64,000 nt of DNA from Scyliorhinus canicula (GCF_902713615.1 NC_052162.1:126132653-126196652); one strand, 5' to 3'. Shown: positions 22,200 through 53,429, numbered from the stretch's first letter. The notes: generated by a model not told the origin, from the letters alone. Program-made: numbers and translations.

Positions 22200-22634
22200 T
22201 TGTGACATCACAAAGGAGCACGTCCTCTAAATCAGCCAAAAGGAATGAATCCGTTGCGCGGTGACGTCAGTGCATTTGTGTGTGAGTACACGGGATACAC
22301 GCCCCCACCCTTTGTTCCCTCTCCCCCAGCATACAGTATCGTCATGACGGTTTCCAGGCAACCGGCTGACAGCTCCGGCCACAGCGAGAAGCCCCAACCC
22401 AGGACTGCGCATGTCTCAGGAAGAGGGGAATCTGCGCATGTGCAGGGTGAGCTCAATCCCGCGGTGCGCAATGGGAAGATTGGAGGACCGGAAGGACTTT
22501 GCTTCTCTGCCAATCAGAGCCCCCCCATTGTCTCAATGCGGAAGCTGGACATGGAGGTTTGTGCTGAGCAAAGCTGTTGTTCCCCCAACCCTGAATGAGC
22601 TTGAGCTGTACACAGACTCCTGTCTTCAACATCT
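22200..22634 (+). promoter_or_regulatory. CpG promoter and exon 1 of ZNF locus A
   Basis: CRE TGACGTCA 22262-22269, X-box GTTTCCAGGCAAC 22350-22362, TGCGCATG (NRF1-like), CCAATCA; donor CATCT|GTGAGT at 22634/22635. Confidence 0.8.
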
Positions 22635-22747
22635 GTGAGTAAAACACTTTCTTATTGCCCATCCCTAGTTACCCTTCCGAAGTAGTGGTGAGTTGCCTTC
22701 TTGAACTGCTGCAGTCTTTGAGGTGTAGGTGCATCCCCTGTGCTGTT

Positions 22748-22986
22748 TTTTTTTAAATTTGTTTTTTTCTAAATTTAAAGTACCCAATTAATTTTTCCCA
22801 ATAAAGAGGCAATTTAGCATGGCCAATCCACCTACCCTGCACATCTTTGGGGTGTTCGGGCGAAACCCACGCAAACACGGGGAGAATGTGCAAACTACAC
22901 ACGAACAGTGACCCAGAGCCGGGATCGAACCTGAGACCTCGGCACCGTGAGGGAGCAGCGCTAACCACTGCTCCACCATGCTGCCC
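22748..22986 (-). mobile_element. A-tailed HE1-like SINE in intron 1 of A
   Basis: Flanked by CATCC(C/T)CTGTGCTGTT duplication. Confidence 0.9.
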
Positions 22987-23689
22987 TACATCCTCTGTGC
23001 TGTTAGGGAGGGAATTCCAGGATGTTGCCCCAGGGACAGTGAAGGAACGGCAAGATAAATGCTGGCCTAACCAGCATTGTCCACATCCCGTAAATTAATT
23101 TTTAAAAATTTAATATCGGACAGAGATATGTCTAGTGTTATATGGTATGTAATATATATATTATTGATGGTTCTGTAATAAAATACATGTATTATTAGTT
23201 CTAGTTTTGTAATATAGTACTGTACCCACATTATGTATTTCCAGTCATACAGTCATTGCAGCACTGACAGAATCCATTTGGTATCTCAAGTCAATGCTGA
23301 CTCTCTGTACAGTAATCCAGTCAGTCCCATTCCCCCTCGATATCCCTGTTCCCCTGCAAGTTTATTTTCTTCAAGTGACCATCCTATTTAATTTTAAATT
23401 ATTGATCATCTCGACTTCCACAACCCTTGTGGGCAGTGAGTTCCCTGTCCAGTCCACTCCATGACTAAATAAAATTCTTCCTCAGATTTCCCCATCTCTA
23501 ATCAGTAAATGTTCTTATATGGAGATTCTCTCCTCTTGTACAGGTTTAAGTGAGTTTAGATTTGTTGATCAGCAGCTTCAGGAAAATTGGGAAGGAAAGT
23601 AAGTGAATAAAGTCTGTATATTACACACATTTTTCATCCAGTAATATAGACATATATCTGTCTGGCAGCCTGCATGAAGATTTTCAGGT

Positions 23690-23934
23690 CTCTGTGTCCA
23701 GGACAGGAAGCAGTGAGCATGGATCTGTTAATCAGCCTGAATCAGCACCTTCAGGAGAATTGGGAGGGTGAATATTAGATACAGCAGAGTGAGAATGGAG
23801 GGAGAGTGTGTGGGATGGAGATTTAGTGTTTTGGGGAATGAGAGAGGAAAGAATGTTCGATAGAAACTAGAATTGTCTGTTCTGTGTTTCTATCCTGTAC
23901 TGACAATGATTACTGTTGTAAAATCTGTTTGCAG
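23690..23934 (+). other. Conserved cassette of A: 66-nt micro-exon 23702-23767 plus short intron to acceptor 23934
   Basis: TGTGTCCAG|G ... GGAGG|GTGAAT ... TTTGCAG|G; near-identical copies in B, C, D (partial) and E. Confidence 0.7.
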
Positions 23935-24290
23935 GAAGTTCGAACGAGAGGAGTTTGAGGCCGATATCTCAAACTAAATATCACGTCAAGAACTGACTGA
24001 GTCACTCAATTCTTGGGATCATCGGCCTTTGAATCTGGAAGGAGAAAAGTTTGTCTATTCTGTCTGCTTCAAGAGATTTTAAACATCGGTGTGTCTGGAA
24101 AAGCACTGAGACACACACACCCCTTTGTAGACTGTTACAGAGCACTGACTGTGGAAAGAGCTTTAACCAGTTACACAGGCTGACAAAATACTACACCATT
24201 CACAGCAGGGAGAGACTGTATCGGTGATCTGTCTGTGGACGAGGCTTCAATTGATCGTCCAACGTGGTGAGACACAAGATCACCCGGACC

Positions 24291-25718
24291 ATGGAGAAAC
24301 CATGGAAATGTGAGGAGTGTGGGAAGGGATTCAGAGCCCCGCACGAGCTGGAAAGGCATCAACGCAGTCACACTGGAGAGAGGCCGTTCACCTGCTCTGA
24401 CTGTGGGAAGGGATTCACTCGGTTATCCCACCTGCAGAACCACCAGAGAGTTCACACCAGGGAGAAGCCGTTCATCTGCACTGTGTGTGATAAGGGATTC
24501 ACTCGGTTATCCAGCCTGCAGACACACCAGCGACTTCACACTGGAGAGAGGCCTTTCACCTGCTCTCAGTGTGAAAAGGGATTCACTGACATTGGAAGCC
24601 TGCGGAAACACGAACGAGTTCACACTGGAGAGAGGCCTTTCACCTGCTCTCAGTGTGAAAAGGGATTCACTGACATTGGCAGCCTGCAGAGACACAAACG
24701 AGTTCACACTGGAGAGAGGCCGTTTACCTGCTCTGACTGTGGGAAGGGATTCACTCGGTTATTCCACCTGCAGAACCACCAGAGAGTTCACACCGGGGAG
24801 AAGCCGTTCATCTGCACTGTGTGTGATAAGGGATTCACTCGGTTATCCAGCCTGCAGACACACCAGCGACTTCACACTGGAGAGAGGCCTTTCACCTGCT
24901 CTCAGTGTGAAAAGGGATTCATTCACATTGGCAGCTTGCGGAAACACGAACAAGTTCACACTGAAGAGAGGCTTTTCACCTGCTCTCAGTGTGAAAAGGG
25001 ATTCACTGACATTGGCAGCCTGCGGAGACATGAACGTGTTCACACTGGAGAGAGGCCTTTCACCTGCTCTCAGTGTGAAAAGGGATTCACTGACATTGGC
25101 CACCTGCGGAGACACGAACGAATTCACACCGGAGAGAGGCCTTTCACCTGCTCTCAGTGTGAAAAGGGATTCACTGACATTGGCAGCCTGCGGAGACATG
25201 AACAAGTTCACACTGGAGAGAGGCCTTTCACCTGCTCTCAGTGTGAAAAGGAATTCACTGACATTAGCAGCCTACGGAGACACGAACGCGTTCACACCGG
25301 GGAGAGGCCATTCATCTGCTCTCAGTGTGATAAGGGATTCACTCGGTTATCCAACCTGCAGACACACCAGCGAGTTCACACTGGGGAGAAGCCGTTCATC
25401 TGCACTGTGTGTGATAAGGGATTCACTCAATTATCCAGCCTGCTGAAACACAATGTCACTCACACTGCGAGCAGGCCCTTCAAATGCTCTGACTGCAGGA
25501 GGGGTTTCAAAAGCTCTCAGCTACTGATGTCCCACCAGCGCATTCACTCTGAGGAGAGACCGTTCAGCTGCTCTCACTGCACAAAGAGCTTTAGAACCTC
25601 ATCTAACCTGATGAGACACGAGCGAGGTCACACTGGGAAGAGCCCGTTCACCTCTCCGACTGGGAAAAGATTCACTCGGTCATCACTTGCTGAGCCACAA
25701 TGTCACTCACAGCAATGA
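24291..25718 (+). CDS. C2H2 zinc-finger protein A, 16 intact fingers, no effector domain seen; about 4 frameshifted fingers follow to 25968
   Basis: MEKPW start, CxxC-x12-HxxxH repeats with TGE(R/K)PF linkers. Confidence 0.9.
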
Positions 25719-26019
25719 GAGACCCTTTAAATGCTCCGACTGTGGGAGTGGGTTTAAAAGCTCTCAGGTACTGATGTCCCACCAGCGCATTCACACTGAG
25801 GAGAGACTGTTCAACTGCTCTCACTGCACAAAGAGGTTTCAAACATCATCCACACTGCGGAGACACCAGCGAGTTCACACTGGGGAGAGTTGATTCACCT
25901 ACTCTCACTGTGGGAAGGGATTCACTCAGTCATCCAACATGCTGAGACATCAAAGGGTTCACAAGTGATGATGAGTTGGATTCTGTTGCTATTCCTGCTG
26001 TTAATCACAACCAGGATTG

Positions 26020-27545
26020 AACCTGGAGTGGATGGAGGGGTTTGTCTCCTATTCAACTCCTCCTGGTGCTCGGTCATGGCGACCCTGGCGAACTACTGCT
26101 CCCCAGACCCGGAATACCCGACTGTGAAGTACCGTCCAAACTACCTTCCACAGAATTCACTTCTACATCATCACAGCGGTCTACATCCCACCCCAGGCGG
26201 AAGTGAAGAAGGTGCTTGATGAATTATAACCACTATAAATAACAATGAAGCAGAATACCCGGAGGCCTTGTTCATCGTGGCCGGGGACTTTAACCAGGCC
26301 AACCTCGAGTGTACTGCCAAAATTCCACCAACACATCTCCTGCCCCAACAGGGGCCCCGACATCCTTGACCACTGCTACATAAACATCAAGGGCGTCTCT
26401 CAACCCATCTCCTGACTGCACTTCGGAAAACCGGACCACAAGATGGCGCTCCTTCTCCCGGCATACAAGCAGAAACTTAAGCGGGAGAATCCGGTTAAGA
26501 AGGTTGTGCAATGCTGGTCCGAGGCAATAGAAGAGCAGCACGGTAGCATGGTGGTTAGCATAAATGCTTCACAGCTCCAGGGTCCCAGGTTCGATTCCCG
26601 GCTGGGTCACTGTCTGTGTGGAGTCTGCACGTCCTCCCCCTGTGTGCGTGGGTTTCCTCCGGGTGCTCCGGTTTCCTCCCACAGTCCAAAGATGTGCGGG
26701 TTAGGTGGCTTGGCCATGCTAAATTGCCCGTAGTGTCCTAATAAAAGTAAGGTTAAGGGGGGGTGGGGGTTGTTGGGTTATGGGTATAGGGTGGATACGT
26801 GGGTTTGAGTAGGGTGATCATGGCTCGGCACAACATTGAGGGCCGAAGGGCCTGTTCTGTGCTGTACTGTTCTATGTTCTATGTTCTAAGAGCTCCTACG
26901 CGACTGCTTGGAGTCAGTGGACTGGTCCATATTCAAGAACTCAGCAGCCAACCTAAACGAGTTTGCCAGCACCATCACAGACTTCATCAGTAAATGTGCA
27001 GAAGATTGTATGTCAAAGAAGGTAGTACGTACGTTACCCAACCAGAAACCATGGTTTATTCGGGAAATTCACTCCCTACGGAAGGCCATGTCTGACCTCC
27101 GCAAAGCCATCATGGACTCCCAAGAGACAATACCAGACTAAGCTAGAATCACAGATTAACGACATGGACTCTCGTCGGTTGTGGCAAGGCTTAAATAACA
27201 TAATGGGCTACAAAGTAAAGCCGAGTAGAGTCTTCAACAACAGCACAGCCCTCCCCGACAAACTCAATGCATTCGATGCTTATTTCGAGCAGGAAACCAA
27301 CAAACTGCTCCAGGAGCCTTGGACACATCCATACCCAACGTCACAGCCTCCAAAGTCAGATTGGCCTTCTTGAAAGTGAACCCTCAGAAAGCTACAGGTC
27401 CTGACGGAGTCCCTGGTTGTGCACCCAGATCCTCCGCGGACCAACTGGCAGGTGTGTTCGCGGACATCCTCAACCTCTCCCTACTCCGTTCCGAGGTTCC
27501 CACCTGCTTCAAGAAGACCACGATCATACCGGGGTCAAAGAAGAA
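26020..27545 (+). mobile_element. Rex1/Babar-like LINE fragment (endonuclease to start of RT) in the 3'UTR of A
   Basis: GGVCL..NSSWC, AGDFNQA, LDHCY, KATGPDGVPG, VPTCFKKTTIIP. Confidence 0.8.
26534..26888 (+). mobile_element. Full-length HE1 SINE with CR1-type (TGTTCTA)n tail nested in the Rex1 fragment
   Basis: tRNA head, GGCCGAAGGGCCTGTTCTGTGCTG tail, AAGAGC duplication. Confidence 0.9.
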
Positions 27546-27663
27546 CCACAAGACACGAGGAGATAGTGCAAACTCCAAACGGACAGTGACCCGGGGCCAG
27601 GATCGAACCCAGGTTCTTGGTGCCGTGAGGCAGCCGTGCTAACCACTGGGCCACCGTGCCACC

Positions 27664-29312
27664 CAACTGACAGATTTCTAAATCCCAATAACACAAAGGG
27701 AGATGGGGATAGTGTGGGGGAAAAGGCATTGAAATGGATGATCAGCCATGATCGTATTGAATGGTGGAGCAGGCTCGACGGGCTGAATGGCCAACTCCTG
27801 CTCCGATGATAGAAAGATGTGTAGGAAAGTAAATTGTGAAGAGGACATAAGGAGGTTACAAAATGATATAGTTTGGTTGAGTGGGAAAAGATCTGGGAAA
27901 TGGAAAATAACGTGGGAAAATGTGACATTGTCCATGTTGGCCAGGAGAATAAAAAAGCTTATTATCTAAATGGTGAGAGATTGCAGAGCTCTGAGATTCA
28001 GAGGTATCTGGGTGTCCAAGAGCATGAATCACAAAAGGCTAGTATACAGGTACAGCAAGTAATTAGGAAAGCTAATAGAATGTTATTGTTTATTGTGGGG
28101 GAATTGAATACAAAAGTAGGGAGGTTATGCTTCAGTTATACAGGACATTGGTGAGACCACATCTGGAGCACTGTGTACAGTATTGGTCTCATTTAAGGAA
28201 TGATGTCAATGTGTTGGAAGCAGTTCAGAGAAGGTTTACTGGACTCATACCTGGAATTGGAGGCTGGTCTTATGAGGAATGATTGGACAGTCTGGGCTTG
28301 TGTCTTATGGAGTTTAGGTACTTGATTGGACCGTGCAAGACCTTGAGAGGCCTTGGCAGGGTGGATGTGGAAAGGATCTTTCCTCTTGTGGGAGAATCTA
28401 GAAATTGGAGTCACTTTAAAAGTAAAACTTGCCCATTTAAGGCAGAGGATAACTTTTTTCTCTGAGGGTTGAGTCTTTGGAACTCCCTTCCTCAAAGGGC
28501 GGTGGAAGCAGAGTCTTTGAATATTTTGAAGGCAGAGCTGCAAAGAATCTTGATAGGCAAGCGGGTGAAAGGTTATCGGGGTTTAGCGGGAAGGTGGAGT
28601 TGAGGTTACAATCAGATTAGCCGTGAACGTATTGAATGGTGGAGCAGGCTCGAGGGGCCGAGTGGCCTACTCCTGCTCCTAATTCGTATGTTATCACATC
28701 CTTTATAATTGATGTAGCATTTTCCCTCCTACTGATGTCAGGCTAATGGGTCTGTGGCTCCCCATTTTCTCTCTCTCCCTCCTTAAATAGTGGGGTTACA
28801 TTTACCACCTTCCAATCTGCAGGAAGCATTCCAGAATCTATAGAATTTTGAAAAATGATCACCAATGTATCCACTATCTCTACAGCCGCCTCTTTCAACA
28901 CTCTGGGATGTAGAGCAGCAGCTTTTGGGGATTTATTAACTTTCAACCACATTAATTTCTCCAGTGCTACTTTTTCACTAATACTAATCTCTTTCAGTTC
29001 CTCGTGCTCACTAGTCCCTTGGTTCTCTTGCGTATTTGGGCCGATTTCATGTCCTCCATGAAGACAGACACACATTGTTTAGTTTCTCTGCCATTTCCTT
29101 ATTCCCCATTATAAACTCTCCTGTCTCTGCCTGGAATGGACGCACATTGGTCTTTGCTAATCTTTTCCTTTTCACATTCCTATAGGAGCTTTTCCAGTCC
29201 TCCCCAGTTTGCTCTCATATTCTATTTTCTCATTTTGAGTTTCTTGATCCTCCTTTGCTGAATTCGGAAACAAGTTCCCAATCCTCAGGGTTACACTTAT
29301 TTTGGCCATTTT
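27664..29312. mobile_element. Mosaic block of CR1 fragments in both orientations, segmentally duplicated
   Basis: Same fragment junctions recur at ~62150-63810 (direct), in part at 41600-44400, and inverted at 54290-58030. Confidence 0.9.
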
Positions 29313-29317
29313 ATGAG

Positions 29318-30096
29318 TGATAAGAACTCTTATTTTATCTTCAAATAAGAGCCCAAGATCTGATTGGAGGTGTCCAAACATACAACTTTATTGCTAATTA
29401 TCCACCTTGATTTTCTTACATTAAAATAAATCAAAATTCAAATCAAATAATACATCAAAACATAATAAAGAGAGTTAAAAACATAAAATATTAGGAAATC
29501 AATAGATGGTTCAGCATTTCTTAAAGCATGAATAAAGAACAAACTTTAATCTTGAAACTTTATTCTTAAAGAAATTCTTATCAATGGTCTTATTGGTTTC
29601 AAATTCTCAGCTGAGGTTCCTGATTTATTCAAAAAACTCTGCCACTTGGAGCATGATTTGTTATCCAGGCATTGGTCATTACTTAAGATTCATTAATGTC
29701 TGTCAAGTTAATTAAATGTCTACATGCTCCTACCACGTCTACCAATCCTCTGAAGATAAGGTGTTCTGCATTAACCTTGCTTGTTGCTAAGGCTTTGCTA
29801 CTATTTGTAAATGTTTCTGTTGCTAAGGCTGCGATACTTTGTCATTATGAGATGTATTTGTAGAGCAGTGGTTTATTCATTATGTGGGCTTTTATGCAAC
29901 TTTTCTTGAAACAGTGTTAGATTCTGACACATGTTAAGTTGCTGTACAGCAATTCTCATATTTTTATCTGAAACAATGACTTTGCCTTGTGGTTTTTCCA
30001 TTTTCTGTCTGTATGTATACTGAGTTTAAGAATTATACTGCATCGATTCTTCAAGGTACCAATAAATCAGTGAAGCAATAAATCTGTAATCTATCA
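29318..30096 (-). mobile_element. Solo LTR (779 bp)
   Basis: TGATA...TATCA ends, perfect 5-bp TSD ATGAG (29313-29317 / 30097-30101); empty site TTTATGAGCCTCTTCC at ~44310. Confidence 0.9.
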
Positions 30097-30639
30097 ATGA
30101 GCCTCTTCCTTTGACCTAATGGAATCTTTAATTTTTCTTGTTAGCCACAGTTGTGTCACATTTCCTGTTGGATTTTTGTTTCTTAAAGGAATCTATATTT
30201 TATGTAAATATGTAACAAAGCCTTAAATGCTAGCGATTGCCTGTATGTCATTACACATTTTATTGTAAGTTTCCAATCAACTGCAGACAACTTTCCCCTC
30301 ATAGCTTGACAGTTTCCTTCTGAGTCAGTACTATGTAACCACCACAGCCTCTCTTCATCTAAACCTGCATTCTTTAAGGGTTTCAAACAGAAATAGGAAC
30401 GATATGTCATCTACCTGCCAAACACCCTTTCACTCTGTGATCCTTGTGAAATTTGAAGCCAAGTATTTGCCACAAGGCTCAAGAGTATCAGCCCACTGGA
30501 AGCAAAGTCGTGAGACCGGCCAGTCCAGCAGAAATAAACCCTCCGACCCTCCCCATTGACCAACTGACAGAATGAACACAATGCTGTTCCAGGTGTAATT
30601 GAGAGTAGCAACAATAACAGCAGAATCCAATCCCTGTAA

Positions 30640-31060
30640 TCACTTGTGACCTTGTTGATGTCTCAGCAGGTACGAGGAAACACTGAATCCCTTCCCAGAC
30701 CGAGAGCAGATGAATGGCCTCTCCCAGTATGAACTCGCCGGTGTGTTTGCAGGGTGAATGACTGACTGAATCCTTTCCCACACTGAGAGCAGCTGAATGG
30801 CCTCTTCCCAGTGTGAACCCTCTGGTGTGTTTGCAGAGTGAATGACTGACTGAATCCTTTCCCACACTGAGAGCAGCTGAATGGCCTCTCCCCAGTGTGA
30901 ACCCTCTGGTGTGTTTGCAGGGTGAATGACTGACTGAATCCTTTCCCACACTGAGAGCAGCTGAATGGCCTCTCCCAGTGTGAATGCGCCGATGAGCTTC
31001 CAGTACAGATGGGTCTTTGAATCCCTTCCCACAGTCCCGGCATTTCCACTGTTTCTCCAT
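30640..31060 (-). pseudogene. C2H2 ZNF locus B, 5 fingers with two -1 frameshifts
   Basis: MEKQWKC start; three near-identical SQSFTLQTH fingers; both shifts at ACTGGG(G)AGAGG linkers. Confidence 0.8.
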
Positions 31061-31194
31061 GTTTTGGGTCTCCTTGTGTCTCTCCAGGTTAGACAATTGA
31101 AGCCTTATTCATGCAGAGAACACGTGTACAGTTCCTCCCCGCTGTGAATCTCTGTAACTGGTTAAAGCTCTTTCCACAGTCGGGTGCTCTAGAA

Positions 31195-31331
31195 CAGTGC
31201 CAGGGACCGGCAGTCTCCCGTGACGTTGAATATCACTACTGTCTCTTTCTTTTCTGGAAACACTCCACGTACCGGCAGACGATGGCTCGCGTACTGGCAC
31301 CGGTACGCGTACCACACTATGAGGAGCACTG
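31195..31331. mobile_element. hAT-Charlie-type MITE (137 bp)
   Basis: CAGTG...CACTG ends, perfect 8-bp TSD CTCTAGAA (31187-31194 / 31332-31339). Confidence 0.9.
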
Positions 31332-31441
31332 CTCTAGAACACTCTCACTCGGGGGTGTCCCCCCCAAAGAATCAAGTGACTCTGTCAGATCAAGAGGTGA
31401 TGTTTGGGATTTCTGTCTGTAATTCCTCCTTTTCTAATATC

Positions 31442-31678
31442 CTGGAAAAACAATTTACAAAATACATCGCTGTCAGAACAGGATAGAAACTCAGAACAGA
31501 CAGTTCTAGTTTCTCTGGAACATTCTTTCCCCTCTCATTCCCCAAAAGCTGTAAATCTCCATCCCACACACTCTCCCTCCATTCTCACTCTGCTGTATCT
31601 AATATTCACCCTCCCAATTCTCCTGAAGGTGCTGATTCAGGCTGGTTGACAGATCACTGCTCCCTGTCCTGGACACAC
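31442..31678 (-). other. Conserved micro-exon/acceptor cassette of B
   Basis: Reverse complement of the 23690-23934 cassette; acceptor TTTTCCAG|GATATTAG. Confidence 0.8.
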
Positions 31679-36277: not shown

Positions 36278-37111
36278 TCACTTATGAACTCGCTGGTGTC
36301 TCAGCAGGTGGCGTGAGTGAGTGAATCCCTTCCCACACTCAGTGCAGGTGACCAGGTTCTCCCCAGTGTGAACTCGCTGATGTCTCAGAATGCCAGACAA
36401 CATTTTAAATCTCTTTGCACAGTGAGAGCAGCTAAAACGGTTTGTCCTCGGTGTGAATATGCTGGTGGACCCTCAGAACCGCAGCATTTTCGAAGCCCTT
36501 CCCACATTCCGAGCATTTAAAGGGGCATTGATTAGTGTGAGTGACCTGGTGTACAGGCAGGCTGGATGACTGAGTGAATCACTGCCCACACATGGAGCAG
36601 GTGAATGGCCCCTCCCCAGTGTGAACTCGCTGGTGTCCGCATGGCCGGTGTATCACTGAATCGATTCCCACACTCAGAGCAGACGGATGGCCTCCCCCAG
36701 TGTGTACCTGCTGATGTGTCACTTAGAAGAATTCCTGAAACTCATCCCACAACTGGAGCAGGTGAATGGCCTCTCACCGGTGTGAACTTGCTTGTGTATC
36801 TGTAGATAAATTGACCGAGTGAATTCATTTCCACACTCAATGCAGGTGAAGAGCCTCTCCCCAGTATGAACTCGTCAGTGTGTTGGTAAGTTGGATGAAT
36901 GACTGATCCCTTCCCACATTCAGGACAGGTGAACGGCCTTTCCCCAGTGTGACTGCGGCAAAGACTCTCCAGCTTAGATTGGGAACTGAATCCCTTCCCA
37001 CATAGAGAGCAGGTGAACGGCCTCTCTCCGGTGTGAATGCGACGATGCGTTTCCAGCACAGATGGAAATCTGAATCCCTTCCCAGCCACCACATTACTGC
37101 GGTTTCTTCAT
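36278..37111 (-). pseudogene. C2H2 ZNF locus C, heavily degraded (about 10 finger units)
   Basis: HTGERPFTC linkers with many frameshifts and stops, ending LRHQRVHK*. Confidence 0.85.
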
Positions 37112-37470
37112 AGTTCGGATGCATTTGTGACTCTGCAGGCTGGACAATCAGTTCAAACGTCATCCACACACAGAACACATGTACGGTCTCTCCTCGCTGT
37201 GAAGGATGTGATAACTTTCATCTGCTTTTTAATTAGTTACAGCTCTTTCCACAGTCAGTGCTCTGGAACACTCTCACTCGGGTGTGTGTGTCTCGGTGCT
37301 TTTCCAGTCACACTGATGATTAAAATCTTTTGAAGCAGACAGAACAGAAAACATTTCTCCTTCCAGCTTCAAAGGCCGATGATATTCCGGTCCCATGGAA
37401 ACGAGTGAATCTATCAGATCGAGATATGACATTTGAGATTTCTGTGTGTAATTCCTCCTCTTCTAATATC

Positions 37471-37712
37471 CTGGAAAAACAATATACAAAAGGTATCACT
37501 TTTAATACAGGGTAGAGATTCAGAACAGACAATTCTAGTTTCTCTGGAACATTTTTTCCCCTCTCATTCCACAAAAGCTGTAAATCCCCATCCCACACAC
37601 TCTCCCTCCATTCTCACTCTGTTGTATCTAATATTCACCCTCCCAATTCTCCTGAAGGTGCTGATTCAGGCTGATTGACAGATCCAAGCTCAATGCTTCC
37701 TGTCCTGGACTC
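37471..37712 (-). other. Conserved micro-exon/acceptor cassette of C
   Basis: Near-identical to the B and E cassettes. Confidence 0.8.
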
Positions 37713-38257: not shown

Positions 38258-38620
38258 AGATGTTGGAGACAGAATGAGGTTGCAGTCTGTGTGAAGGTCA
38301 ATCTTCATTCAAACAAAGCCCGCGCTCTGATTGGCTGGAGGACCAGAGTCCTTCCAGTCCTCCAATAGTTTCCATTGGTTGCCGGCTGCCTGAAAGGGGA
38401 TATCACGTGTCGCTGGGAGAACTTTTGACTCGTGGAACGCAGACAATTTGGGAAATGGGATTAGCACTATCCTGCAAATGCGCTGCTGCCGCTCTCCCTT
38501 GGACATGCAGTCCCGGGGCTGCCCGTCCATGCGGCGGATAGAGCGGGTTACCCAGAATGGGGCATTGTGGGAGGCGCGGTCGTCATTGCTCACCTGGGGC
38601 CCAGTTTCCTGGGACTGGAA
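38258..38620 (-). promoter_or_regulatory. CpG promoter and exon 1 of locus C
   Basis: Donor CCAACATCT|GTGAGTA (minus, intron starts 38257); CCAATCAGAGCGCGGG shared with 49225-49242. Confidence 0.75.
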
Positions 38621-40394: not shown

Positions 40395-41570
40395 GGAGAA
40401 CAAAGAAAATTACAGCACAGGAACAGGCCCTTCGGCCCTCCCAGCCTGCGCCGATCCAGATCCTTTATCTAAACCTGTCTCCTATTTTCCAAGGTCTACT
40501 TCCCTCTGTTCCCGCCCGTTCATATACCTGTCCAGATGCATCTTAAATGATGCTATCGTGCCCGCCTCTACCACCTCCGCTGGTAAAGCGTTCCAGGCAC
40601 CCACCACCCTCTGCGTAAAAAACTTTCCACGCACATCTCCCTTACACTTTCCCCCTCTCACCTTGAAATCGTGACCCCTTGTAACTGACACCCCCACTCT
40701 TGGAAAAAGCTTGTTGCTATCCACCCTGTCCATACCTCTCATAATTTTGTAGACCTCAATCAGGTCCCCCCTCAACCTCGGTCTTTCCAACGAAAACAAT
40801 CCTAATCTACTCAACCTTTCTTCATAGCTAGCACCCTCCATACCAGGCAACATCCTGGTGAACCTCCTCTGCACCCTCTCCAAGGCATCCACATCCTTCT
40901 GGCAATGTGGCGACCAGAACTGCATGCAGTATTCCAAATGTGGCCTAACCAAAGTCCTATACAACTGTAACATGACCTGCCAACTCTTGTACTCAATACT
41001 CCTTCTGATGAAGGCAAGTATGCTGTATGCCTTCTTGACCACTCTATCCACCTGTGTTGCCACCTTCAGGGTACAATGGACCTGGACTCCCAGATCTCTC
41101 TGCACATCAATTTTCCCCAAGACCCTTCCACTGACCATATAGTCCGCTCTTGAATTTGATCTTCCAAAATGCATCACCTCGCATTTGCCTGGATTGAACT
41201 CCATCTGCCATTTCTCTGCCCAACTCTCCAATCTATCTATATTTTGTTATATTCTCTGACAGTCCTCCTCGCTATCTGCAACTCCACCAATCTTAGTATC
41301 ATCTGCAAACTTGGTAATCACACCACCTATACCTTCCTCCAGGTCATTTATGTAGATCACAAACAACAGTGGTCCGAGCACGGATCCCTGTGGAACACCA
41401 CTAGTCACCCGTCTCCATTTTGAGACACTCCCTTCCACCACTACTCTCTGTCTCCTGTTGCCTCGCCAGTTCTTTATCCATCTAGCTAGTACACCCTGAA
41501 CCCCATACGACGTCACTTTTTCCATCAACCTGCCATGGGAAACCTTATCAAACGCCTTACTAAAGTCCAG
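40395..41570 (-). mobile_element. Young CR1/HER1 LINE, 5'-truncated
   Basis: [24 protein letters not shown]; 249-aa C-terminal ORF; intact 3'UTR. Confidence 0.95.
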
Positions 41571-44400: not shown

Positions 44401-45169
44401 GGAATCAACATCTGAGCAGCTGTGAAAATGAACGAAATGCAGTGCTGGATATAATTGAGAGTAGAAACAATAACAGAAACCAACTCCTGCAATCAATTGT
44501 GAACCTGTTGGTGTCTCAGTGGGTGGGAAGAATTACTGCATCACTTTTCCTGTGGATTTTTGTTCCTGAAAGGAATGTGTATTTGTTGCAAATATGTAAT
44601 AAATCCTTAAATGCTCGCAGATGTCTGTTCATTGACTAATCTTTTGTTGCAATTTCCAAATCTCCAACAGACAACCTGTCTCTCATACCTCAACAGTTTC
44701 CTTCTTTGAGAAACACCCAGAAAAATTAAACAAAGAACCATGTAACCACTATAGCCCATCTTCATGGCAACGTGGCATGCTTTAGGGGGTTCCAAACAGA
44801 AATGGGAACTAAATATCTTCCAACTTCCAACATGCTTCCATTCTGTGACCCTTGTGAAATTGGAAACCACATATTCGCAACAAAGCTGAAAGAGCATCAG
44901 CCCACTGGAGGAAACGTTGCGAGACCAGTCGTTCCAGCAGAAAGAAACCCCGACCATCCATATTGACCAATTGACAGGATGAATAAATTGCAGTTCCGAA
45001 TGTAATTGAGAACAGAAACAATAACAGCAGAATCCAATCCCTGCAATCATTTGTGAACTTGTTGGTGTCTCAGTAGTTGCGATGAAACACAAAATGTGTT
45101 CCCACATTGAGAGCAGATGAACGGCCTCTGCCCTCTGGGAACTCGCCGATGTCTCCGCAGGTAGATGGA

Positions 45170-46222
45170 TCACTCAATGCCTCCGCTAATCGGAGCAGGT
45201 GAATGGCCTCTCCCCGTGTGAACTCGCTGATGTCTCTGCAGGCTGGATGAATGTCGGAATCCTTTCCCACAATGAGAGCAGGTGAATGGCTTCTGCCCAG
45301 TGTGAATTCGCTGGTGACTCTTCAAATGGGATAACTGAGTGAATCCATTACCACACTGAGAGCAGATGAACGGCTTCTCCCCAGTGTGAAATCGCTCATG
45401 TCTCCACAGGGTGGATGAATGTCTGAATCCCTTCCCACACTGAGAACAGATGAACGGCCTCTCCCCTGTGTGAACCCGCTGGTGAATTTTCAGGCTGGAT
45501 AACTGAGCGAATCCCTTCCCACACTGAGAGCAGGTGAACGGCCTCTCCCCAGTGTGAATTCGCTGGTGTGTCCGCAGGGTGGATAAATCTCTGAATTCCT
45601 TCCCACAGTGAGAGCAGGTGAACGGTCTCTCCCCAGTGTGAACTCGCTGGTGTGCCTGCAGGTGGGGTGACTGAGTAAATCCTTTCCCACACTGAGAGCA
45701 GGTGAATGGCTTCTCCCCAGTGTGAATTCGCTGATGTGACTTCAGGCTAAATAACGCAGTGAATTCCTTCCCACACTGAGAGCAGGTGAATGGCTTCTCC
45801 CCAGTGTGAACCCGCTGGTGTGTCTTCAGGTTGGATACCTGAGTGAATCCCTTCCCACACTGAGAGCAGGTGAATGGCTTTTTCCCAGTGTGAACCCGTT
45901 GGTGTGACTTCAGGCTAGATAACGCAGTGAATCCCTTCTCACACTGAGAGCAGGTGAACGGTCTCTCCCCAGTATGAATTCGCTGATGTGACTTCAGGGT
46001 GGATGAATGTCTGAATCCCTTCTTACACTGAGAGCAGGTAAACGGCTTCTCCACAGTGTGAACTCTTTCATGTGACTTCAGGCTGGATAATTCAGTGAAT
46101 CCCTTCCCACACACAGAGCAGGTAAATGGCCTCTCCCCAGTGTGACTGCGTCGATGAATCTCCAGCTTAGATCGGACTCTGAATCTCTTACCACAGACTT
46201 CACATTTCCACGGTTTCTCCAT
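45170..46222 (-). CDS. C2H2 zinc-finger protein D, 12 intact fingers, no effector domain seen; about 2 decayed fingers follow to ~45050
   Basis: [10 protein letters not shown] start; canonical fingers; frameshift after finger 12. Confidence 0.9.
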
Positions 46223-46829
46223 GTTTTGGGTCTCGTCGTAACTCTCCAGATCAGACAATCAGTCGAAGCCTCGACCACACACAGTACACGTGTACGGTCT
46301 CTCCCCGCTGTGAATGGTGTGATGTTTTTTCAGGCTGTGTAACTGGTTAAAGCTCTTTCCACAGTCAGTGCTCTGGAACACTCTCACTCGGGTGTGTGTG
46401 TCTTGGTGCTTTTTCAGCCACACTGATGTTTAAAATCGTCTGAAGCGAACAGAACAGACAAACATTTTTCCTCCCTTCTCGATTCAAAGGCCGATAATAT
46501 TCAGGCCCCGATGAACCGAGCGACTCTGGCAGATCGAGATGTGACTTTTGAGATTTCTGTCTGTAATTCCTCCTCTTCTAATATCTTGTAAAAACAATTT
46601 ACAAAAGACATCATTGTCAGTAAAGGATAGAAACTCAGAACAGACAATTTTAATTCCTCTGGAACATTTTATCCTCTCTCACTCCGCAAAGGCTGTAAAT
46701 CTCCATCCCACACACTCTCCCTCCATTCTCACCCTGCTCCACAACAAGTGAAGAACTCCCTCCTCATCTCAGCTTTGTCTCCATTTTCCTGCCTGTTTTC
46801 CATAACCCTCGACTCCCTGGTCATCAGAA

Positions 46830-47600
46830 ATCGGTCTGGGTGGGAACCATGTGATGCGGCGCAGGAGTAGCTGCTTTCCCGCAGGTTCTGATGCCACTCA
46901 CCTAGAATCCGTCATTTATCCTGATTGCTCGGCACTCGTTTACCTGATCCTTGAATTAATATTTGTTGTCATGTCTCTGGAAGACATCGGGATTAGGAAA
47001 GGTAAGATTAAGAAATCCGTTGATAACAGAGCGGAGGCAGATTCAGTGGGGGTGGAGCCGCCTTTTCAACATGGCGGCCTGACCCTTGGGAGGTCTCTCG
47101 ACCCCGCGCTCTCCGGGGCTCTCTCGGAGGTGGCGAAGATGGTGACTGCCGACATTCTCCGTGTTATTGACCAGAGGCTGAGTGAGCTGACTCAATATCT
47201 CTGAGCTCATGAGGCCGAGCTGCAAAATACCATGAAGAGGCTCATTGATCCCGAGGCTGCGAGGGAGACCGGGAAAGCGAAGGATGCGGGAGGGAATATG
47301 GTCTTGGACCCGACGGGTGAGAATGGGGTGTTTCGGGACTTCTATAGCAAGCTGTACGAGTCGGAACCCCGAGCCGGGGCGGAGGCGATGAGGCGGATTT
47401 TAGAGGGGATGGAGTTTCCGAAGGTGGAAGAGGAGCTGGTGGAGGCCCTGGGGGCCCCAATGGGCTGGTAGAAGCATCATTCACTTTCCTGGTCTCCCTT
47501 GCAGTCCCCTGCTTCCTCAATTGCTGCACTAGCATCCTGCTCGCCTTCTCCCTGTACTCATTCACCACCCCCCTTACCCTTCTCCACTCCCCCACCACCT
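46830..47600. mobile_element. L1 fragments: ORF1 5' part (+), ORF2 piece (+) and inverted ORF2 piece (-)
   Basis: FRDFYSKLYESE; EYREKASRML.QQLRKQ. Confidence 0.75.
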
Positions 47601-47816
47601 TTCCTGCAGATAGACCCCTGTTGGATTTCTGTGTCTATTCGGAACCCTGGATATCCGTTATCCCTACTTAGTTCCCAAATAACAGAGGTCAAGTCTGTGC
47701 TTTTTGGCAAAGTTCAGTTCAACTTTATTTGTCAGCTTGAGTCACTGGTAAACTTTATTTGTCAACACAAGATTAGGTCAGATTGATTGTCTTTAGCGAA
47801 TACAGTAGTTGAGTTT

Positions 47817-48136
47817 AGAACATACAGGGCAGAAGGAGGCCATTCGGCCCATCGAGTCTGCACTGACCCATTTAAGCCCTCACTTCCACCATATCCCCGT
47901 AACCCAATAACCTCTCATAACCTTTTTTGGTCACTAAGGGCAATTTACCATGGCCAATCCACTGAACCTGCACATCTTTGGACTGTGGGAGGAAACCGGA
48001 GCACCCAGTGGGAACCCATGCAGACATGGGGAGAACGTGCAGACTCCGAACAGACAGTGACCCAGCAGGGAATCGAACCTGGAACTCTGGCGCTGTGAAG
48101 CCACACTACTAATCACTTGTGCTACTGTGCTTCCCA
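47817..48136 (-). mobile_element. HE1 SINE
   Basis: tRNA head and CR1-type tail. Confidence 0.9.
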
Positions 48137-48269
48137 ATTTCATTCAATTACATATTGTGGTAATTCTTCAAATTATAATACACAGAATAAAATGACTGAG
48201 TGATTTAAAAAAAGAAAGATGGTGATTTAGCAAAAACAAGTAAAGGAAATAGGTTTCAGAAAGAGATAG

Positions 48270-48925
48270 ATAGAGGGACTGAAGGTGATGCAATCGGGCA
48301 AGGCCCCTGGTCTGGAGGGGGAGCGGTGAAATTTTATAAGAAATTCTCAGGGGTATTGGGGCCGGTGCTGGTAAGGGATTTTAACGAGGCAAGGAAGCTG
48401 GGTGTGCTCCCCAAAGTTGTCACAGGCTTCGATATCCCTCATTTTGAAGCAGGAAAAGGACCCAGAATAATGCGAGTCATACAGACCGATCTCCCTGCTA
48501 AATGTAGATGCTATTGCCTTAGATCTTGGCCTGGAGAATAGAGGATTGTGTCCCGGGAGTGATAAGGGATGTCTAGAGGGGGTTGTGAAGGTGAGGCATC
48601 TGGCAGTCAACATCAGGAGGCTCCTCAATGTGATCACGATACCTCCAGAGGGACGAGAGGTAGAGCTGGTGGTCGCCATGGATACAGAGATCGAGATGGT
48701 GTGGGACTATTTGTGGGAGGTTCTGGGGCGGTTTGGATTTGGACAGTGTTTTGTGGACTGGGTCCGGTTGTCATACCAGACACCAGTATCGTGTGGACAG
48801 ACAAACTGGGTGAGTTCAGATTATTTCAGGCTGCACCGGGGGACGAAGCAGGGGCGCCCACTCTCCATACTGCTGTTTGCCCTGGCTTTAGAACTGTTGG
48901 TGATGGCACTGAGAGCGTCAGGGGC
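48270..48925 (+). mobile_element. L1 ORF2 RT fragment
   Basis: WDYLWEVLGRFGFG, RGTKQGRPLS. Confidence 0.9.
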
Positions 48926-49202
48926 TAGTAGGATTGTGGACATTATGAAAGAGACCATCCTTTTAGCCAGACAAATAAATGTGTCAAGCTGAGGGAACAA
49001 AGGATGTCAACGTCTTTAAGAGAGAGAGAGACCTGGGACAAGCTTTCCAGAGTCTGCACCCTCCCTGGATTCACTTCCTTTCCCTTCAGTTGCCGCAAGT
49101 GACCAATTGAAGGTGAGAATGAGAAAAGAAATGGAAAGGGGGAGAAAAGAAAGTGTTTTACTCACAGATGTTGGAGACAGGAGGAAGTTTCAGTCTGTGT
49201 GA

Positions 49203-49664
49203 ACTTCAACCTTCAATTACACAAAGCCCGCGCTCTGATTGGCTGCTGGGCCAGAATCCTTCCGCTACTCTTCTCTTCCCATTGGTCAACACCTCAGCAG
49301 AGAGGTCAGGGGGTGGGCTTTCCCTCGCACATGCGCAGCCTCTTCGCTCTCTTGGACATGCGCAGTCCCGGGCCGGGGGGAGGGGAAATCACCGAGCGAC
49401 TTCTCGCTCTGGCCGGAGCTGTCAGCCGGTTGCCTGGAAACCTTGTCTGGAGGAGGGGGAACAAAGAGTGGGGCGGAGCTGCTGGGTCCGCGCGCCGGGC
49501 CTGCGCACTGGAATCCTGAGACGTCGCCGCGGATTCCTCTGCGTGCGCAGGAAGGTTGTTGACCAATGGGAAGAGTTGATGAACCGGAAGGACTCTCTTC
49601 TACCATCCAATCAGCTCCCCCGTTGTCTGAATGCGGAAGCTGGACAATGAGGAAAACTGGGACC
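49203..49664. promoter_or_regulatory. Bidirectional CpG promoter for D and E
   Basis: CpG-rich; X-box GTTGCCTGGAAAC 49429-49441; CATGCGCA x2; CCAAT boxes facing outward on both sides; GC box. Confidence 0.85.
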
Positions 49665-49827
49665 TCACACAGACTGAAACCTCCTCCTGTCTCCAACATC
49701 TGTGAGTAAAACACTTTCTTTTCTCCCCCTTTCCATTTCTTTTCTCATTCTCACCTTCAATTGGTCACTTGCAGCAACTGAAGGGAAAGGAAGTGAATCC
49801 AGGGAGGGTGCAGACTCTGGAAAGCTT

Positions 49828-50057
49828 TGATGTGGAGATGCCGGCGTTGGACTGGGGTGAGCACAGTAAGAAGTCTTACAACACCAGGTTAAAGTCCAAC
49901 AGGTTTGTTTCAAACACGAGCTTTCGGAGCACGGCTCCTTCTTCAGGTGAATGGAGAGGTATGTACCTCTCCATTCACCTGAAGAAGGAGCCGTGCTCCG
50001 AAAGCTCGTGTTTGAAACAAACCTGTTGGACTTTAACCTGGTGCTGTAAGACTTCTT
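49828..50057 (-). mobile_element. Penelope-like element: inverted pLTR pair forming a hairpin
   Basis: 97-bp arms (49865-49961 / 49964-50060) with 1 mismatch; 14-bp TSD ACTCTGGAAAGCTT; empty site at 49040-49053. Confidence 0.9.
49976..50010 (+). ncRNA. Minimal type I hammerhead ribozyme motif (mirror copy at 49915-49949 on minus strand)
   Basis: CAC-CUGAAGA-A-GGAGC(CGU)GCUCC-GAAA-GC-UC-GUG. Confidence 0.7.
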
Positions 50058-50259
50058 ACTCTGGAAAGCTTGGCCCAGGTCTCTCTCTCTCTCTCTCTCT
50101 CTCTTAAAGACATTGACATCCTTTGCTCCCTCAGCTTGACACATTTATTTGTCTGGCTCAAAGGGATGGTCTCTTTCCTAATGTTCACAATTAGAAGGGC
50201 TGGTTTCTCCAGGAGATGGCTGACATTTAAGGGGACAGTGAATTAATATCAGATAGACA

Positions 50260-50442
50260 TGAAATGAAATGAAAATCGCTTATTGTCACGAGTAGGCTTC
50301 AAATGAAGTTACTGTGAAAAGCCCCGAGTCGCCACATTCCGGCTCCTGTTCGGGGAGGCTGGGACAGGAATTGAACTGTGCTGCTGGCCTACCTTGGTCT
50401 GTTTTCAAAGCCAGCGGTTTAGCCCTGTGCTAAACCAACCCC
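50260..50442 (-). mobile_element. Short tRNA-derived SINE with (TTTCA)n tail; relative at 40060-40226
   Basis: GGAATTGAAC B-box complement, GAAGTTACTGTGAAAAGCCC core. Confidence 0.75.
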
Positions 50443-50831
50443 TAATGGGACACCAGACATGCCTTGTGTTGTTATCTGGTACAGATTAGATATATTATTT
50501 ATGCTTCTGTAATGAAGTACATTTATTATTATTTCCTGTTTTGAAATATTCTACTGTATTTATGTTATATATTTCCAGTCATCTCTTCCCTCAGAGGGTT
50601 AGTAGTCTGGATTTCTCTTCCACAGGGACCAGTGGGATGTGGGGGTCATTGAATATATTCACGGATGAGGTGGACAGATTTTTAATAAGTTATTATTTTT
50701 TAAATCATTTTTTAAACAATGAGTACAACAGAGTAACAGAAAAACTGGTGGGAAATGGGTACAGAGCGGAACAAGACATATTGCCAACATAAATACAAGC
50801 AACACATTGCAGAATTAATTTGGAACAGGAT

Positions 50832-51130
50832 AGGCAACACGGTAGCACTATGGCTTCACAGCGCCAGGGTCCCAGGTTCGATTCCCAGCTGGATCACTGT
50901 CTGTGCGGAGTCTGCACGTTCTCCCCATGTCTGCATGGGTTTCCTCCGGGTGCTCCAGTTTCCTCTCACAGTCCAAAGACGTGCAGGTTAGATGGATTGG
51001 CTATGATAAATTGCCTTCAGTGACCAAAAAAGGGTTAGGAGGGCTTATTGGATTACGGGGATAGGGATTAAGTGGGTTGGTGCAGACTCGATGGGCCCAA
51101 TGGTCTCCTTCTGCACTGTATGTTCTATGT
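50832..51130 (+). mobile_element. HE1 SINE
   Basis: GGTTCGATTCCC; CR1-type tail. Confidence 0.9.
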
Positions 51131-51139
51131 ATGATATTT

Positions 51140-51650
51140 GAGGGACCAGAGCCTCGGGGTGAAATGCCAGATCAATTGAACAACCAGTTAACTGGTTAAA
51201 ATAGTGAGTGGGGAAAGAGGGTAAGAGCTGTGAATGATTACAGGCCTGGGATGAAAACTATCCCTCGGCCTCAAAGACAGGATCCGATGCCCTTTCTAAT
51301 TTGAATTGCCCAGGCTTCACATCCAGCTGGAGAAAACGTGGCAGCAGGTCCTTGAAGAACCTAACGGGAGCCTTACCCTCCACATCTTCTGGCAGGCCGA
51401 CAACTCGAATGTTCTTTCTCTGACCCTCGGTTTTCCATGTTCTCCAGGAGTCCACCACCCCACTCAGCCGGTTTTCCACGGATTAAATTCTTGCCTTTGC
51501 CGAGGAGGCATCTTACTCAACATTCGGGATTCTCTCCTCGGGATCATCGAATCTCTTCATGGTGTTTTGCAGCTCGGCTTCATGGGCTCACAGATATTGA
51601 GTCAGCACACTGGTCAATAACACAGAGAATGTCGCTGACATCGATCGGCC
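51140..51650 (-). mobile_element. L1 ORF1 fragment
   Basis: RKNIRVVGLPEDVEGK..FFKDLLP..LERA. Confidence 0.85.
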
Positions 51651-51720
51651 AATGATCCCACAGAATAAACGAGCAGGCTCGATGGGATTAATGGTCAACT
51701 ACAGCTCGTATTTGTTATGA

Positions 51721-51960
51721 TCTCTGTGTCCAGGACACAAAGCAGGCATCTGTCAATCAGCCTGAATCAGCACCTTCAGGAGAATTGGGAGGGTGAATAT
51801 TAGATACAGTAGAGTGAGAATGGAGGGAGAATGTGTGGGATGGAGATTTACAGCTTTTGGGGAATGAGAGGGGAAAGAATATTCTCCTGGAACTAGAATT
51901 GTCTGTTCTGAATTTCTATCCTGTACTGACAGTGATGTCTTTTGTAAATTGTTTTTACAG
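51721..51960 (+). other. Conserved cassette of E (59-nt micro-exon 51734-51792; acceptor 51960)
   Basis: TGTGTCCAG|G...GG|GTGAAT...TTTTACAG|GATATTAG. Confidence 0.75.
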
Positions 51961-52289
51961 GATATTAGAAGAGGAGGAATTACAGACAGAAATCTCAAAC
52001 GTCACGTCTCAATCTGACTGAGTCTCTCAATTACTTGGAACTGAATATCACCGGACATTGAAACGAGAAGGAGAAATGTTTGTCTGTTCTGTCGGCTTCA
52101 AAACATCAGTGTGACTGGAAAAGCACCGAGACACACACACCCGAGTGAGAGTGTTCCAGAGCACTAACTGTGGAAAGCCTGAAAAAACATCACAGCATTC
52201 ACAGCGGGGAGAGACCATACACGTGTTCTGTGTGTGGACGAGGTTTCAACTGATTGTCTAAATTGGAGACACACGAGGAGACCCAAAAC

Positions 52290-52820
52290 ATGGAGAAACC
52301 GTGGCAATGTGGGGATTGTGGGAAGAGATTCAGAGTTCCATCTGCACTGGAATCTCATCGGCGCAGTCACACTGGGGAGAGGCCATTCACCTGCTCCCGG
52401 TGTGAGAAGGGATTCTCTGAGTTATCCAGCCTGAAGAGACACCAGCGAGTTCACACTGGGGAGAGGCCGTTCAACTGCTCTCAGTGTGGGAAGGGTTTTG
52501 CTCACTTATCCCGCCTGCGGATACACCAGCGAGTTCACACTGGGGAGAGGCCGTTCACCTGCTCTCAGTGTGGGAAGGGATTCTGTCAGTTATCCAGCCT
52601 GCGGGTACATCAGCGACTTCAAACTGGGGAGAGGCCGTTCACCTGCTCTCAGTGTGAGAAGGGATTCAATACCTCATCGAGCCTTCTGATACACCAGCGA
52701 ATTCACACTGGGGAGAGGCCGTTCACCTGCTCTCAGTGTGGGAAGGGATTCACTCAGTTATCCAGCCTGCAGAGACACCAGCGAGTTCACACTGGGGAGA
52801 AGCCATTAACCTGCTCTTAG
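52290..52820 (+). CDS. C2H2 zinc-finger protein E, 6 fingers (4th has H to Q), premature TAG, about 3 decayed fingers to ~53050
   Basis: MEKPWQC start; TGERPF linkers. Confidence 0.8.
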
Positions 52821-53429
52821 TGAGAGAAGGGATTCAGATATCCCGACACCCTGCGGGAACACTAGCGAGTTCACACCTGGAAGAAGCCATTCAGCTACTC
52901 TGAGCAGGGGAGACATTCAATGATCCGTCCCAACTACGGAGACACTAGCGAGTTAATTCTGGGGAGAGACCATTCATCTGCTCTCAATGTGGGGGGAGGG
53001 GGGTTTGTGATTCATCGCACCTGTTGTGACTCCAACAAGTTCACAATAAATTCCAGATGTTGGCTCCGTTGTTATTGTTTCTGCTCTCACTGACATCCAG
53101 GACTGCATTTTGTTCATTCTGACATCTGGTGAATGCTGATGATTGGAGGGTTTCTTTCTGCTGGACTGGCCGGTCTAACACCTCTGCCTCCGGTGGGCTG
53201 ACCATTTCTGAGCCTCGTTGCGATTACCTGGCTCCAAGTTTGACGAGGAGCACAGAATGAAAAGGTGTTTGCATGTTGGGAGATATTTAGTTCCCAAAGC
53301 AGCCATGTTGCCATGAAGATGGGCTATGGTGGTTACATGGTTCTTTTGCCTAATTTTTTTGGGTGTTTCTCACAGAAGAAACTGCCATGGAATGAGCGGC
53401 AAGTTGTCTGGTAGATTGGGAAATTACAA

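Follow-up and report, generated by a model that had tools for sequence, protein, structure and literature searches.

The window analysed here is a 64,000-nt stretch of the Scyliorhinus canicula genome (GCF_902713615.1 NC_052162.1:126132653-126196652), in which five C2H2 zinc-finger loci, designated A to E, were found. A first-pass annotation had described at each of them a cassette of ~240-260 bp, comprising a micro-exon and a short intron, and had proposed genes made of zinc fingers only, with open reading frames (ORFs) starting at MEKPW and the non-coding cassette as their constant part. The cassette was recovered at all five loci where it had been reported, complete at four and partial in D. 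A 65-nt core recurred with 0-1 mismatches at 23740 (+), 31573 (-), 37602 (-) and 51765 (+), against a chance expectation of 0; the third copy belongs to pseudogene C, in which the core is near-invariant, as had been claimed. Further, a 32-nt core of the intron was detected in 5/5 loci with 0-2 mismatches (in D at 46693-46724) and kept at 29 of 31 positions in the divergent contig L003. This contig is one of four small host-DNA contigs from metagenomes (L001-L004; ENA and JGI, L002 being from a JGI sample), and public metagenomes are thus usable as a source of extra shark copies of the family. Scanning metagenomes with the intron core, and again with the branch-point block of the same intron, gave no matches, though L002 is from a JGI sample.

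The cassette is read here as exon 2 (the micro-exon) and intron 2 of a three-exon shark C2H2 zinc-finger gene. In gene orientation, homology among the five units was not limited to the cassette: it set in 15-60 nt before the micro-exon and continued unbroken across the intron as far as the first array finger. Nor was the cassette the sole conserved island; conservation was equally high around the exon-1 donor, around the branch point and where relic fingers 1 and 2 meet. The micro-exon measured 66 nt in A and C, and 59 nt in B and E, which have a 7-nt deletion in common; the 59-nt form is not frame-neutral. Intron 2 was 167-168 nt long, with a 5' half rich in G runs (3-4 in the first 100 nt, versus a background of 1.2 per 100 nt) and a branch point (TACTGAC in locus A) and pyrimidine tract at the 3' end. 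The AG/GT boundaries, branch point and tract were conserved, and the micro-exon donor (GGGAGG/GTGAAT) was non-optimal as judged by eye. The 66-nt micro-exon starts with one base and ends with two, a symmetric phase that fits exons 1 and 3 and leaves the frame unchanged. Judging from splice signals, phase and conservation, the most plausible role of the micro-exon is that of an optional coding exon, with the frame given by the first-pass annotation. It was missing from D, L001 and L003, with a different boundary in each, which indicates that it is dispensable in relatives and cannot be overwritten by distant paralogues. A different micro-exon frame (..SLNQHLQENWEG, with an ATG in A only) was dropped after a RefSeq model had set the phase of exons 1 and 3. 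Coding through intron 2, as in the read-through models P0151 and P0158, was judged unlikely, since the open frames differ between copies and the splice landmarks are conserved. Tails resembling short interspersed nuclear elements (SINEs; ..GATGGGCCGAATGGCC..) were observed directly upstream of the micro-exon in B, C and E.

In A, C, D and E, a promoter-like block was identified ~1.1-2 kb upstream of the cassette, including two CCAAT boxes, a short exon and the invariant donor ..CAACATCT/GTGAGT. A 25-mer spanning this exon-1 donor showed 0-1 mismatch across the four loci. In E, exon 1 reads MRKLDNEENWDLTQTETSSCLQH from the ATG at 49631 and ends in phase 2. Residues 1-24 of a Scyliorhinus torazame RefSeq model (XP_072360167, hereinafter referred to as P0133) matched exon 1 of E at 83%, and its residues 25-64 resumed exactly at the exon-3 acceptor of E, so that exons 1 and 3 are linked by a gene model that is independent, albeit computational. 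In the promoter island between D and E, the inner arms (49040-49202 and 49665-49827) were 98.8% identical, versus 80-86% further out. Apart from this, a 43-bp element was found with 97.7% identity, in opposite orientations, in the promoter of A (22349-22391) and at the symmetry centre of the D/E palindrome (49400-49442). Within it, GTTGCCTGGAAAC is similar to an RFX X-box, one half-site being good.

Translation of the start of exon 3 yielded an acidic motif (..ILEEEELQTEISN..S..DLTESLDSSGPEYHRPLKLEGE), in pieces across reading frames, followed by three decayed fingers. The motif comprises ~40 residues with the consensus DLTESLDSSGPEYHRPLN.EG, and its family pattern, ..E.E.LQT..SNQTS.QDLTESLDSSGPEYH.PLN.EG, stands directly upstream of the first finger. 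Within the window, the motif profile matched the five loci and nothing else (E 2e-15 to 6e-7), the matches being split across frames by indels. In a search of 1.84 billion representative proteins it gave 26 matches at E<1e-3, and the motif was located in frame immediately before intact fingers in RefSeq proteins of Pristiophorus japonicus, Heterodontus francisci, Carcharodon carcharias, Cetorhinus maximus, S. canicula and S. torazame. Two tandem copies of the motif were present in P0133, P0145 and P0147 (RefSeq models from Scyliorhinus and Cetorhinus). The second tandem type (RKFE.EEFE.DISN..) is the type found at the exon-3 start of A, and P0133 stops after DISN, exactly where A has a TAA. 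AlphaFold, run on the alignment of the motif (A4, 15 members), returned one long helix with a predicted local distance difference test score of 77.5 and a predicted template modelling score of 0.31, too weak to build on.

The absence of KRAB and SCAN sequences from the window, reported by the first-pass annotation, was upheld by six-frame searches. A profile from 24 KRAB N-termini gave a best E of 1.6, against 1e-11 to 1e-31 for held-out controls, and phmmer with a SCAN N-terminus gave a best E of 1.3, which is a weak test as it used one query. A Pfam scan of the N-terminal parts of the shark relatives detected no family, no KRAB and no BTB (no BTB query was run against the window itself). A word-indexed search with the N-terminal 45 residues returned 10 candidates, three of them from sharks, which served as leads; the same type of search with the motif of P0125 returned P0125 itself only. 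An Atlas feature search of the motif region retrieved generic ZNF clusters only (score 0.71), and a protein search with whole arrays was dominated by generic ZNFs and uninformative about the family. No description of a shark ZNF family with a pre-finger motif was found in the literature.

The ORFs had been taken to begin directly at MEKPW. Upstream of this sequence, relic finger 1 (MFVCSVC.KRF.TSV.LEKH), relic finger 2 (VFQ(S)TDCGKSFNQLHSLKKH) and relic finger 3 were recognised in succession, and the Met of MEKPW is the linker residue after relic finger 3. An in-frame TGA was located at helix position -1 of relic finger 3, 12 codons upstream of the Met, in A, C, D and E and in contigs L001 and L002; locus B has a 4-nt deletion at this site. 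The ORFs therefore appear to begin at MEKPW because the in-frame TGA exposes the linker Met. The white-shark RefSeq model P0135 ends at the TGA position, and the catshark copy at the P0136 locus has TGG. Since the TGA is common to the window copies, L001, L002 and the end of P0135, the stop is old, and the order of TGA, 12 codons, Met and array is a trait of the subfamily. Arrays behind the relic-finger leader and the TGA were intact in L001 (1311-2360, 349 residues) and L002 (444-1706, 420 residues). Several upstream ATGs and short ORFs were present in the leader ahead of MEKPW.

Lesions were found in every window copy, including loss of the exon-1 ATG (C and D), an insertion carrying a stop in exon 1 (A), loss of exon 1, which was not found upstream of the cassette (B), and stops or frameshifts in the motif, where a 5-nt deletion in E is common to B, C and D. 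Exon 2 and the exon-3 acceptor were lost in D, the latter by mutation of CAG to CAA, and the arrays were broken in B, C and E. An open frame from start codon through motif to array was found in 0/5 window copies, all of which had stops or frameshifts in the motif and relic fingers. The five loci are members of the motif family by descent, not intact members. Accounts of them as genes built of fingers only from MEKPW, or of the cassette as a free-standing non-coding anchor, fail on the coding exon 1 upstream (in E, 49631-49701) and the acidic motif at the 5' end of exon 3; the cassette is a relic of the 5' coding and splicing region of the family. The broader proposal of a shark analogue without an effector and with a constant cassette stands as regards the slowly evolving constant part and the absence of KRAB and SCAN, and falls as regards design, in that the upstream part has decayed. 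The upstream coding part matched no known effector domain, and the effector-less look of the window loci is partly an artefact of decay.

A total of 47 finger motifs with 84-nt periodicity were identified in the five arrays: 16 in frame and 2 out of frame in A, 1+3 frameshifted in B, ~6 recognisable with stops in C, 12+1 in D, and 5 plus one that has lost a His in E. The arrays do vary, and the recount roughly agrees with the earlier numbers (16, 5, ~10, 12 and 6). A young block duplication was found in A (24393-25043), in which fingers 2-5 are repeated as 6-9, with 98-100% identity for the pairs 2/6 and 3/7; the two final fingers of A recur once more downstream, out of frame (25485-25878). 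A constant opening 'WKC' finger (..KPWKC.DCGK.F..PS.LE.HRRSH) was found in A, B, D and E, and C has a relic of it. At its non-contact positions, the ratio of the proportions of non-synonymous and synonymous differences (pN/pS) was 0.17-0.30 between loci. Comparison of this finger with L001 and L002 gave a pN/pS of 0.27-0.54 at a pS of 0.3-0.5. Framework (non-contact) finger codons generally showed a pN/pS of 0.3-0.5, and contact positions ~1 or higher. For the framework of collinear fingers of D and E, 27/98 synonymous versus 39/334 non-synonymous sites differed (p=3e-4; p=0.002 for fingers 1-2 alone). These framework values below 1 indicate that the arrays were still constrained at the protein level once the TGA had arisen. 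In contrast, the relic fingers showed a pN/pS of ~1 and were little diverged, pS and pN both being ~0.1. The leader is conserved at the nucleotide level, not at the codon level.

The position of the TGA raises the question of a two-product design, in which the stop would split an upstream ORF (exon 1, motif and relic fingers) from the array ORF, with readthrough, reinitiation or alternative splicing, and the leader would be conserved to serve a switch between module-bearing and fingers-only products. The TGA occupied the same codon in 7/8 readable copies from at least 3 sources, always 12 codons before the Met; P0135 has an intact 114-residue upstream ORF ending at it; and the relic-finger DNA (~90%) was better kept than the neighbouring translated finger at synonymous sites. 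Such a design is nevertheless hard to reconcile with the other stops and frameshifts in the upstream ORF of 5/5 window copies and with relic fingers free of protein-level constraint. The stop has no known readthrough context, with no selenocysteine insertion sequence-like element and only a weak tRNA-Sec-like match elsewhere, and TGG to TGA is a single transition, so that the layout could be plain inheritance. We consider a two-product design highly improbable. A related reading would make the ~40-residue acidic, possibly helical module (DLTESLDSSGPEYHRPLN.EG) the shark counterpart of KRAB and FiNZ at the front of a very large ZNF family, with the fixed UGA 12 codons before the Met deciding the product in one old subfamily and the leader islands, cassette included, serving that switch; its chances appear slim.

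Divergence was counted over A, B, C and E after masking of all CpG columns, the cassette being represented by the micro-exon and the 60 nt of intron that follow it. Variable sites amounted to 14/120 in the cassette; the 3' intron had 26/101, the linker 39/89, the relic fingers 55/135 and the segment just upstream 15/28. The cassette was thus ~3 times less variable than the pooled flanks (14/120 versus 120/325), with Fisher p=1e-7 against the downstream and p=5e-6 against the upstream flanks. Its divergence was not equal to that of the co-duplicated flanks, and the claim that it evolves more slowly holds. In addition, L004 (shark host DNA from an ENA metagenome) was 90-97% identical to the window copies in the cassette and 75-85% downstream. 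Even against the distant contigs L001 and L002, the block around the branch point retained 90-97% identity; for the relic finger 1/2 junction the value was 87-94%. A structured RNA was rejected as an explanation for the cassette, which folded no better than its shuffles (z=+0.76), and no Rfam family was found in it. The conserved blocks coincided with splice landmarks, namely the short exon, its donor, the G-run region and the branch point. In short vertebrate introns, G triplets close to the 5' end reportedly act as splicing enhancers.

The copies also exchange sequence, as indicated by three observations: informative sites supported many mutually incompatible splits, the centre of the D/E palindrome is homogenised, and locus A combines a cassette 92-100% identical to the others with an exon-3 start that belongs to another, old paralogue type (RKFE.EEFE.DISN, seen in P0133 as its second unit). 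Site patterns of this kind point to gene conversion among the copies, which may have included the cassette itself. The same observations would suit concerted evolution alone, with a cassette functionless in all copies and merely the most recently homogenised, or with flanks overwritten from distant paralogues, and the missing micro-exon of L001 and L003 fits as well, since distant paralogues cannot convert it. Homogenisation alone leaves unaccounted for why the conserved block should be exon 2, its donor and the G-run region, with a 3' island at the branch point, and why L004, from another sample, has the same profile. Exchange as the only cause seems to us improbable.

Working repressors made of fingers only and translated from MEKPW would offer another explanation, in which purifying selection now acts on the cassette as a non-coding cis element, either a 5'-untranslated exon with a splicing or transcriptional control element or a recombination anchor common to the family. 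It draws on the low variability of the cassette relative to both flanks and in the independent contig L004, on the 32-nt intron core surviving in D and L003, on framework purifying selection that postdates the shared TGA, and on the age of the TGA-then-Met layout with long intact arrays behind it in L001 and L002. It conflicts with the state of the loci, because D has neither micro-exon nor exon-3 acceptor, B has no exon 1 and the arrays of B, C and E are broken. Moreover, the micro-exon is dispensable, the cassette has neither an Rfam match nor a stable fold, upstream ATGs and short ORFs precede MEKPW, and the relatives carry an N-terminal module. On balance, this explanation is rather unlikely.

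The account that we prefer, and hold to be reasonably probable as a whole, is that of a three-exon gene with a decayed front and a cassette kept by splice-signal constraint and conversion. The loci would be five paralogous copies of one shark-specific C2H2 zinc-finger gene, with D and E inverted relative to each other on either side of a common promoter island with CCAAT boxes. The ancestor would have had exon 1 with the start codon (MRKLDNE...), the optional 66-nt exon 2, a short intron, and a large exon encoding first the ~40-residue acidic pre-finger motif and then the fingers. In the subfamily of the window, the first three fingers would have become relics, and the old in-frame TGA in relic finger 3 would make the longest ORF start at MEKPW. 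Most or all of the five copies are probably dead or dying members of a birth-and-death cluster, whose finger frameworks would have been under protein-level constraint until recently. The low cassette divergence may reflect exon definition and 5' splice-signal constraint on a short, weakly defined exon in working progenitors, together with gene conversion among paralogues. Conservation of the cassette is accordingly best attributed to splice-signal constraint and paralogue exchange jointly, two causes that are unseparated here.

Several points weigh against this account. The only RefSeq model mapped, P0133, skips the micro-exon. Constraint in progenitors alone cannot keep the cassette intact in copies that share old lesions, so that the account leans on conversion. 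A and D keep long open arrays of 474 and 351 codons from the Met, with framework pN/pS <1, and some copies may still make fingers-only proteins. Further, the conserved leader islands, including the relic fingers with pS and pN of ~0.1, hint at a nucleotide-level function.

Large, fast-evolving ZNF families that police transposons are known from tetrapods, where the module is KRAB, and from carp-like fish, where it is FiNZ. To our knowledge, cartilaginous fish are treated as having no equivalent. The shark loci resemble the KRAB-ZNF genes of tetrapods, lungfish and coelacanth in forming clustered birth-and-death loci rich in transposable elements with many pseudogenes, in having a constant 5' part followed by one large 3' exon with a variable tandem C2H2 array, in combining fast contact residues with a constrained framework, and in carrying relic fingers ahead of the working array, a feature said to be known for KRAB-ZNF genes. 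They differ in that neither the loci nor their relatives have a KRAB box (PF01352), and in that the ~40-residue shark motif, which matches no Pfam family, opens the finger exon instead of having an exon of its own. From SCAN-ZNF genes they differ in the absence of the SCAN domain (PF02023) from the window, in the single-query test. FiNZ genes of cyprinids form a very large lineage-specific family with a 28-residue acidic, glutamate-rich N-terminal sequence on its own exon and without likeness to known domains (Wells et al., 2023; PMC10547256). Compared with this description of FiNZ, the shark family is alike in architecture and composition only, being a large lineage-specific family with a short acidic N-terminal sequence before a variable array. 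The shark motif is longer, lies in the finger exon, can be tandem (P0133, P0145 and P0147), occurs in a different taxon and has lost its reading frame in the five window copies, and it is unlikely that the shark loci are members of FiNZ-ZNF.

The motif, being shared across shark orders, is a candidate for a third independent ZNF partner module. The five window loci are mostly dead copies, which is ordinary for such clusters, and the interest lies at the family level, in the candidate partner module and the fixed TGA-Met layout. New here are exon 1, the optional exon 2, the motif and the leader made of relic fingers. ORF-based annotation of such clusters, with MEKPW starts and "uncharacterized proteins" of 78-139 residues, misreads the gene structure. 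The features of the five loci are listed in Table 1.

Table 1. Features of zinc-finger loci A to E, in window coordinates.
Feature	Coordinates	Strand	Remarks
A, promoter and exon 1	22349..22634	+	43-bp X-box-like element 22349-22391; CCAAT box 22510; ATG 22536 (MRKLD...)
A, exon-1 lesion	22596-22598	+	Insertion carrying stop; donor after 22634
A, micro-exon (exon 2)	23702..23767	+	66 nt
A, intron 2	23768..23934	+	167 nt
A, exon-3 leader	23935..24290	+	Exon 3 starts 23935; acidic motif with TAA at Gln codon; three relic fingers with TAA and TGA stops
A, array ORF	24291..25718	+	From Met of MEKPW; 16 fingers
A, extra fingers	25732-25878	+	Two, out of frame
B, micro-exon	31610-31668	-	59 nt
B, intron 2	31442-31609	-	Full cassette 31442..31668
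B, leader and array	30488..31441	-	Exon 3 starts 31441; motif cut by deletion and ~130-bp insert; frameshift after finger 1 (1+3)
C, promoter and exon 1	38258..38378	-	Two CCAAT boxes; invariant donor; in-frame ATG lost
C, micro-exon	37639-37704	-	66 nt
C, intron 2	37471-37638	-	Full cassette 37471..37704
C, leader and array	36284..37470	-	Exon 3 starts 37470; motif readable in one frame; relic fingers with stops; array wrecked
D, partial cassette	46586..46738	-	3' part of intron 2 only
D, replacement DNA	46739-47150	-	~410 bp of unrelated DNA in place of micro-exon and its donor
D, leader and array	45170..46585	-	Exon 3 starts 46585; motif, relic fingers, TGA; 12-finger ORF from Met 46222; array runs on out of frame to ~45053
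D/E, shared head-to-head promoter island	49040..49827		Exon-1 donors 49166 (-) and 49701 (+); CCAAT boxes both sides; exon-1 ATG of D lost
E, exon 1 ORF	49631-49701	+	Intact
E, micro-exon	51734-51792	+	59 nt; shifts frame
E, intron 2	51793-51960	+	Full cassette 51734..51960
E, leader and array	51961..53433	+	Exon 3 starts 51961; stops in motif; relic fingers; TGA; decayed fingers to ~53433
E, array ORF	52290-52820	+	From Met; six fingers, one without its last His

The insert in the leader of B (~130 bp, at ~31150-31360 on the minus strand) is bounded by a repeated GTGTTCTAGAGCA-like stretch, which points to either a local duplication or a small insertion that duplicated its target site. A hairpin palindrome of 202 bp (49862-50063) was found in intron 1 of E, just beyond the shared promoter, with two 100-nt arms that are 98% complementary and separated by a 2-nt spacer. 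It yielded mirror-image ORFs on both strands and a weak, sub-threshold Rfam match to mir-4660, and is possibly a foldback insertion or one resembling a miniature inverted-repeat transposable element. Fragments of reverse transcriptase of the long interspersed nuclear element type were located between the zinc-finger loci at 40482-41231 (-), 53447-53833 (+) and 55850-56155 (+), of which only the last gave a Pfam RVT_1 match (E 9e-7).

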